Shown here in pieces: positions 7,790 through 8,698 of a stretch of DNA of 64,000 nt. A model generated the notes under the pieces. It was not told the origin of the DNA. It worked only from the letters and a program-made list of their open reading frames with translations, and did no database searches. The stretch's first letter is position 1. The number at the start of each line of letters is the position of its first letter. Source of the stretch: Thalia democratica (Eukaryota). The stretch lies in the NCBI GenBank assembly GCA_965202585.1, contig OZ241826.1, forward strand, positions 40,176,001-40,240,000, written 5' to 3'. The position numbers and the translations under genes were made by a program.

Positions 7790-8698
7790 TTAAGAATAAA
7801 ACTCAACCAAATATCTTGGCACTACAAGCTTTTCATCGCAGACATAATGGTTTAAGTCGTCTTTGTTGTTTCCATTACAATCTGTAATTTTTCTTCCATG
7901 ACTGTCTGTTTCATATATATCTGCAGAAGCTTTCATTCCAGGTCTGAATTCTAAATGCCTTTCAAATCTATACTTTCTCGGGTTACTGTGCAGTTCAGGG
8001 ATACTATTATGTAATAGAATTGTAAATAAAGGTATAGCTAAGCTAGCGAGGATCAGCGATCCATTATAATTCCCGAATAAGATGAACGAGAGTACAGTTA
8101 GAACTGAAACTAGCGAAAACCATGTAACTAAGATTGGATGGCAAATTATTTTCAGTTTTTCTGACTCGATAACTTCATTAACTATTACGACCTTTCCTCT
8201 GACGTTTTTCGAATACAAAGCTTTCTTTAAGGAATGTTTTGTTGCTGTTAATGAGCTTGCTGTTAAGTAGATACCAGGTCCATAACGTCCTTTAGCAGAA
8301 GGCTTAAAACCTTTTTCAAGAATACCAACCGCATTGTAGACATTTGTTCCATGAAACAACAGGAGATTCTTACTTTTACCTTCAGCAGTATCACCATTTT
8401 CACGTTTTTTAACTCGATAAACTCGATAAATTTTCATTGTAAAATCTTCACTCAGAGCAAACTTTAAAAGGTTTATTGTTCTTTCTGTGAAGCATTTTTT
8501 AATGAGGTTATAATCTAACTCTCCATCTTTTATTTCTTTCAAAACATACATTGAATTTTCACTATACAAATCAACAACTTTTGTAGCACTGTTGTTTGTA
8601 ACAACAACATACTCTTTATCTATCACTTGGTATAGTGTCTTGAATTTGACATAAGTACGAAATAGGAAGTATCCTAGGATGTCCATCAAATATCTCAT
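7790..8698 (-). CDS. PARP/ADP-ribosyltransferase catalytic-domain protein, 302 aa, intronless, with internal hydrophobic hairpin
   Basis: PARP motifs LLFHGT (H116), GRYGPGIYLT (Y144), VIVNEV, terminal HYVCDEKLVVPRYLVEF; hydrophobic aa 189-208 and 214-229. Confidence 0.85.
   Translation of the reverse strand: MRYLMDILGYFLFRTYVKFKTLYQVIDKEYVVVTNNSATKVVDLYSENSMYVLKEIKDGELDYNLIKKCFTERTINLLKFALSEDFTMKIYRVYRVKKRENGDTAEGKSKNLLLFHGTNVYNAVGILEKGFKPSAKGRYGPGIYLTASSLTATKHSLKKALYSKNVRGKVVIVNEVIESEKLKIICHPILVTWFSLVSVLTVLSFILFGNYNGSLILASLAIPLFTILLHNSIPELHSNPRKYRFERHLEFRPGMKASADIYETDSHGRKITDCNGNNKDDLNHYVCDEKLVVPRYLVEFYS

Follow-up and report, generated by a model that had tools for sequence, protein, structure and literature searches.

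PARP16 (ARTD15) is a tail-anchored mono-ART of the ER, and its catalytic domain faces the cytosol (PMC3372510; PMC4245714). It has an N-terminal helical domain and one transmembrane helix at the C terminus, after the catalytic domain. Terminal transmembrane regions are also reported for PARPs of sponge, Rhizaria and rice in a survey of PARP architectures (PMC4245714). These cases show that PARP catalytic domains acquired membrane helices on several occasions. None of the surveyed proteins has its membrane helix within the catalytic domain; the helix either precedes or follows it (PMC4245714). Likewise, our literature search found no description of an anchor within a PARP catalytic domain, although this is not proof of absence.

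Here we describe a gene for a PARP-type ADP-ribosyltransferase with an internal hydrophobic hairpin. It lies at positions 7790-8698, on the minus strand, of a 64-kb stretch of Thalia democratica DNA (the window, meaning the whole stretch analysed). The window protein and PARP16 are both small PARP-type proteins without the catalytic Glu, and PARP16 is membrane-held with a cytosolic catalytic domain. However, they differ in three respects. The C terminus of the window protein is not hydrophobic (KD peak 0.19). A Pfam scan with E up to 1 gave no match to ARTD15_N (PF18084). Finally, the putative anchor sits inside the fold, between two strands.

The Clade 3 macro-PARPs PARP14 and PARP15 share with the window protein the H-Y pair followed by a non-acidic third residue, and they are its best sequence matches in the PDB. 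Nevertheless, this likeness covers the first half only, and the modelled structure aligns best with PARP1 and PARP2. The window protein also differs from the PARP14/PARP15 class in lacking accessory domains, be they macro, WWE or others. The hydrophobic insert is absent from PARP14 and PARP15. The window protein is a member of an unnamed, intron-free family of small PARPs, in which the two-helix insert occurs in one clade only (7 of the sequences compared). Judged from the model, it would resemble a membrane-held mono-ART in its working, yet it belongs to a family without a name.

The gene, its fold and its catalytic residues

The ORF is intact. It consists of one exon with a single open frame of 302 amino acids, ends in a TAA stop, and is the longest among the few long ORFs of the window. 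The window is AT-rich, with a GC content of 0.22-0.39 in 2-kb steps. The coding GC of the gene is 0.33, against about 0.23 in its surroundings. An exact look-up of the protein among public assemblies returned no record. We also considered a mobile or retroposed copy and sought direct repeats around the gene; only AT-rich chance matches appeared.

The Pfam PARP catalytic domain (PF00644) matches the window protein with 38.6 bits (cut-off 26.7), on residues 85-160 only. The insert-free relative P0009 matches positions 2-197 of the 199 of this profile in one stretch, which indicates that the insert is the cause of the interrupted match in the window protein. Among PDB entries, human PARP15 is the closest by sequence, with E 7e-7 for the single protein and 4e-12 for a profile, and the match includes the first domain half only. 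Both searches were limited to this half in their alignments, and His284, discussed below, was not placed by them.

A first structure model, from 9 sequences, had a pLDDT of only 44.6 and was set aside. AlphaFold with 100 relatives gave a model of pLDDT 83.5 and pTM 0.82, in which the core exceeds 90 in most of its 10-residue blocks. Foldseek matched this model to the catalytic domains of PARP2 and PARP1 (E 5e-10), and a Protein Atlas shape search matched the PARP core only. VIA-align against PARP1 and PARP2 gave Z 17.3 and an rmsd of 3.0-3.4 over 191-198 residues, pairing residues 39-302 of the model with 772-1007 of PARP1. Since this alignment spans 39-302, both halves are used in the ART fold. 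The model rebuilds one fold from them, and the hairpin leaves and re-enters at the same loop.

The first part of the fold, residues 39-188 (8135-8584, minus strand), carries H116, Y144, His155 and the strands 169-176 and 183-188. The second part, residues 240-302 (7793-7981, minus strand), holds the PRKYRFERH motif, the strands 245-251, 262-264 and 270-272, His284, and the last strand VVPRYLVEF. Before the fold, the model shows an N-terminal helix at residues 2-30 (8609-8695, minus strand; pLDDT 52-60). Its hydropathy is weak in the window copy (KD peak 0.74), in contrast to the N terminus of relative P0001, which is membrane-helix-like (2.19).

The triad of the window protein is H116-Y144-His284. 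H116 (codon 8351-8353) lies in LLLFHGT and Y144 (codon 8267-8269) in GPGIYLT. Across the family, these two NAD+-binding residues, G117 and the GxG motif show little or no variation. The initial annotation had proposed a His at the position of PARP1 E988, and this holds. More precisely, the His of LNHYVC is residue 284, not 285 (codon 7847-7849), and occupies the third, Glu988-type position of the triad. Glu988 of PARP1 sits in N-E-Y-I-V, and His284 begins the penultimate strand (284-287) of the model. Judged by motif and by modelled strand position, His284 is the equivalent of Glu988. Over 34 aligned family rows this position is Y in 16 and H in 11, with D, E, F and C once each. In these aligned sequences, a His in place of the Glu is common and not peculiar to the window gene.

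A second proposal, that the PARP1 Y907 position is also a His, agrees with the alignment. Y144 and His155 (codon 8234-8236) are 11 residues apart, as are Y896 and Y907 of PARP1. The family rows show F in 21, Y in 9 and another residue in 4. Since F or Y stands there in 30 of the 34, His155 is peculiar to the window copy. It may weaken the binding of NAD+.

With His284 there is no catalytic Glu, and with His155 no second nicotinamide-stacking aromatic residue. The window protein thus lacks two features of polymerase-type PARPs (PARP1/2/tankyrase). Among human PARPs, those in which I, L, Y or T stands in place of the Glu are active mono-ARTs. Read from its residues, the H-Y-His arrangement fits a mono-ART or an NAD-binding protein. 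We found no paper on an H-Y-H triad in PARPs in our literature search, which is not proof of absence.

The hydrophobic insert

The insert comprises residues 188-229 (8012-8137, minus strand) and reads PILVTWFSLVSVLTVLSFILF-GNYNG-SLILASLAIPLFTILL. Two hydrophobic stretches had been noticed earlier at about 8012-8134, and both, ILVTWFSLVSVLTVLSFILF and SLILASLAIPLFTILL, lie inside this uncharged run. Its 42 residues include no D, E, K, R or H, whereas these make up 32% of the remaining protein. The chance of a charge-free run of 42 residues at a given place is about 1e-7. We assessed the membrane propensity of the run with hydropathy scales. The 19-residue Kyte-Doolittle peaks are 2.41 and 1.93, both above the limit of 1.6 for a membrane helix. 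On the Hessa scale, a simple sum is favourable for helix 1 (-2.0) and unfavourable for helix 2 (+2.7). Helix 1 has 21 residues, enough to span a bilayer. Helix 2, with 16-17 residues and a central Pro, is marginal.

The model shows the insert as a pair of antiparallel helices, 191-208 and 211-230 (pLDDT 67-74), joined by the GNYNG turn. The hairpin departs after strand 183-188 and returns before strand 245-251. Small residues (S, T, A) recur every 3-4 positions along both helices. The flanks contain K and R on both sides, KLK before and PRKYRFERH after; a motif of the PRKYRFERH type is also present in insert-free relatives. The turn is short and nearly uncharged in every member of the clade. 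Two hydrophobic helices, a short turn, no charges and basic flanks are the features of a helical-hairpin anchor. The 42-residue hairpin is probably a membrane anchor.

The insert is stop-free in the gene frame in all six copies checked, and the other five frames have 1-9 stops each. In dinucleotide shuffles, a stop-free frame of the insert appears in 0.7-3.8% of the trials per copy (0.007-0.038). Where copies differ in length, they do so by whole codons. The insert has a GC content of 0.35, against 0.33 in the other coding sequence and about 0.23 in the surrounding window. We estimated dN/dS with the Nei-Gojobori method. The first catalytic half has values of 0.16-0.42 and the last part 0.21-0.47, with 0.21-0.28 given for residues 240-302. 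The insert, with 0.6-0.96, drifts nearly neutrally. Such drift is expected where hydrophobicity alone is constrained, as in a lipid-facing anchor.

A different reading takes the stretch as an in-frame intron or an optional part of the exon, so that the mature product would be a small soluble PARP of the ordinary type. In its favour, the loop is short in most relatives. The window copy does contain in-frame GT..AG pairs, such as one of 117 nt from 8120 to 8004, and RNA coverage ends at 7890 and leaves the segment uncovered. However, among in-frame pairs of at least 60 nt in eight copies, the donors are weak (4-6 of 9 consensus positions, with 4 of 9 for the best of the window copy) and their places are not conserved. 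The loop of relative P0037 has no in-frame GT..AG pair at all. The stop-free gene frame beside stop-rich alternatives, and a GC content close to that of coding sequence, also argue against splicing. Two 151-nt reads, of unknown library type, lie unspliced on the gene, one of them on 7970-8120 (run X5). We consider the intron reading very improbable.

The search for RNA across the insert found none; the only RNA contig covers 7709-7890, and none of the matching reads or contigs shows splicing. This contig of 234 nt comes from an oligo-dT marine metatranscriptome, is about 96% identical, and includes the last 100 nt of the ORF along with the 3' UTR. The match hints at transcription in the sea, of the gene or of a near copy of it. 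The gene region is also matched by genomic contigs, which carry two organism labels.

Relatives, inheritance and the state of the window copy

A word search gave 8 and then 36 relatives. An exhaustive representative search gave 1102 proteins at E<=0.001, of which 43 at E<=1e-30. The relatives that we found stem from contigs of about 1 kb in marine metagenomes, for the most part Tara Oceans. The window protein shares with them the motifs LLLFHGT, GPGVYLT, VNE..ESE, PRK..FE.Y and VCDEKLV.PRYL. A Protein Atlas feature search led to unnamed or generic PARP clusters only. Among ten clusters of distant relatives, nine are unnamed metagenome proteins and one is an uncharacterised fish protein. The family is large, unnamed and intron-free, and is so far found only in AT-rich DNA of marine eukaryotes.

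The stretch between the invariant Ser179 and Phe245 shows where the window protein departs from most of this family. In most relatives it has 16-25 residues (typically EKLEEIVVEKEITVNTASPRKNQ). It is hydrophobic and 55-73 residues long in P0001 to P0005 and in the window protein. P0037 has about 50 residues there, with two helices of about 14 each. P0012 has 36, with a single uncharged run of 21-23. Homologues with the two-helix insertion do exist among the relatives, and these form one clade.

More precisely, at least seven insert-bearing proteins form a single clade in a maximum-likelihood tree (support 96/88). An earlier tree with six of them gave 94/80. The insert columns were left out of the trees, and the single clade therefore means that the insert arose once. 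It persists down to 43-51% identity. The sister of the hairpin clade is the pair of P0012 and the insert-free P0021 (95/98). The single hydrophobic stretch of P0012 (L011:36-899) presents a topological puzzle of its own, since one full span would leave each half of the fold on a different side of the membrane.

Hydrophobic segments are rare in the wider family. A segment with KD of at least 1.9 is present in only 12 of 171 relatives, and in those inspected it lies in the insert loop or at the N or C terminus. Hydrophobic tails at the C terminus occur in the more distant members P0053, P0054, P0098 and the wrasse protein P0121 (XP_029138649.1). With these tails and the membrane-helix-like N terminus of P0001, membrane anchoring recurs in the family. 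Since such ends look like tail anchors, small PARPs appear to have gained membrane targeting more than once.

The hairpin might also lie outside the membrane and serve as a greasy arm of helices that is buried in a partner protein or within a homo-oligomer. That ART domains are able to use protein interfaces is seen in PARP15, whose ART domain is reported to need dimerisation for activity (PMC12572374). The small residues at every third or fourth position would suit helix packing, and the short inserts of P0037 and P0012 are ill-suited to full membrane spans. On the other hand, 42 charge-free residues with KD up to 2.41 are typical of lipid-exposed helices and not of protein interfaces. A specific interface would not allow the near-neutral drift of the insert, and relatives with classical hydrophobic tails at the C terminus point to membranes. 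A buried arm is improbable in our view, and a membrane anchor is the reading that we follow below.

A fragment of a pseudogene of the same hairpin clade lies at 20970-21250 (minus strand), about 12 kb from the gene. It was recognised from tblastn matches and a three-frame reading, and it matches residues 116-217 of P0002 with E 7e-12. It has stops and a frameshift, and the N-terminal catalytic half is missing. The initial annotation had claimed that this copy keeps the His and traces of the hydrophobic segment, and that both features predate the local duplication. Our reading supports this, with limits. The His is present in IYHYFCDE. What is left of the hairpin is the turn together with the final part of helix 1 (LFLVVRTNIDSINLAS vs LFLALGIYVDSVNLAG); LKKHSNP is found in another frame, and the C-terminal strands are retained. 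As the pseudogene carries both His and insert, these are older than the duplication, and the tree independently agrees.

The surroundings of the two copies are duplicated as well, in the blocks 13028-13371 with 21748-22099 and 14125-14990 with 22984-23847. Two RING-finger genes, at 14181-14837 and 23041-23697 (both plus strand), are intact, with 218 amino acids each and 78% protein identity. Each stands head-to-head with a PARP copy, one intact and one broken. A membrane link of these RING proteins was considered and ruled out, as they have no hydrophobic segment.

The window copy has changes of its own. At 8413-8430 (minus strand), the 9-nt unit TTTATCGAG stands twice in exact tandem and gives YRV-YRV at residues 91-96, in a beta-strand of the core. 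This duplication is absent from every relative and appears as a 3-residue gap in the alignments of all homologues. One contig of run X3 lacks about 10 letters at 8413-8430, so copies without the duplication may exist. The terminal branch of the window copy is long (0.78). Two other members of the hairpin clade are decayed. P0005 (L007:866) has an in-frame TAA, with the conserved C-terminal strands readable behind it. P0002 (L006:154) is truncated at the 5' end, with the first ~90 codons gone.

Taken together, His155, the 9-nt duplication, the branch of 0.78 and the decay in the family lead us to give about one chance in four to the window copy being inactive or a poor binder of NAD+. It may be losing function. 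A wider form of this doubt keeps the same architecture and takes the copy, or the whole His-bearing clade, as a pseudo-enzyme, that is, a membrane-held binder of NAD+ or ADP-ribose or a scaffold. The His at the third catalytic position and the His at the nicotinamide-stacking position, F or Y in 30 of 34 relatives, would be in line with it, as would the fresh duplication within a core strand and the long branch. Nevertheless, H116, G117, Y144 and the GxG motif are near-invariant, and both halves are under purifying selection. The active human PARPs with I, L, Y or T in place of the Glu also mean that its loss alone does not amount to inactivity. We regard a pseudo-enzyme as unlikely, and still as a serious alternative.

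A further reading is a dying gene copy with a frame open by chance. Turnover in the family is high, as the pseudogene 12 kb away and the broken P0002 and P0005 illustrate, and the window copy has its odd changes. However, 302 open codons at 33% GC are improbable by chance. Outside the insert, dN/dS against relatives is 0.21-0.46. In addition, the metatranscriptome contig described above matches the 3' end and the 3' UTR. This reading is hardly credible. As far as these sequence comparisons go, the window copy is intact and on average still under purifying selection.

Sequencing runs give some further observations on the locus. In run X1, contigs of about half depth, some 10% divergent, cross the gene at 7966-8765, with no indels in the hydrophobic segment. 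Their divergence points to a paralogue very close to the gene or to a second haplotype. In each of the DNA runs X1 and X3, one contig joins 7678 to 8778 and skips the whole gene (1099 nt). Just 21 AT-rich letters fit the shorter side of this join, which could be a gene-absent allele or a chance join.

Proposed working and meaning of the within-fold hairpin

We propose, as a moderately probable explanation, a small stand-alone PARP-type enzyme of the mono-ART kind, with a membrane hairpin inside its fold that enters from the cytosolic side and is inherited in one clade. The computational results, including the model, support a membrane-held mono-ART as a predicted function. In the proposed history, the surface loop between strands 183-188 and 245-251 would have lengthened in one clade, from about 20 to 55-73 residues. 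The lengthened loop would then have become an uncharged helix-turn-helix. Most likely, the hairpin would go into the membrane from the cytosolic side and come out on the same side. With such a same-side hairpin, the two catalytic halves can still assemble as one domain. The basic flanks and the short uncharged turn fit, at the level of sequence, a catalytic domain that would lie wholly in the cytosol.

The catalytic domain would lie flat on the membrane, with the K/R-rich flanks KLK and PRKYRFERH at the interface. There, the enzyme would bind NAD+ from the cytosol and modify itself or nearby membrane-bound targets. We infer the membrane insertion, the cytosolic orientation, the mono-ART activity and the targets from the features set out above. 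The depth of insertion may differ between members. The shorter inserts, two helices of 14 residues in P0037 and a single stretch of 21 in P0012, suggest an anchor that may enter one leaflet instead of crossing the membrane twice. As helix 2 is marginal, and P0037 and P0012 are too short, a monotopic dip into one leaflet is as likely as a double span, at least in some members.

A bolder version sees the membrane hairpin that splits the ART fold as a heritable innovation, with the active-site face pressed on the membrane. The targets would be membrane proteins, perhaps also lipid head groups or membrane-bound viral factories. The gene would then be part of a fast-evolving, immune-like expansion of small PARPs beside RING E3 genes in a planktonic tunicate. 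We offer this version as speculation, and think it rather unlikely in full.

An anchor within the fold would allow the active site far less freedom of orientation relative to the membrane than a flexible tail allows. With the active site so rigidly placed, the targets would be restricted to the membrane surface. Domain scans truncate proteins of this type, as seen here, where Pfam detects residues 85-160 only. The relatives provide natural controls, with short loops, a single hydrophobic stretch, two helices of 14 residues, and C-terminal tails. With these, the effect of the anchor position on the target choice of a mono-ART becomes directly testable. The hairpin clade would be a clean example of a surface loop of a conserved enzyme turned into a membrane hairpin.
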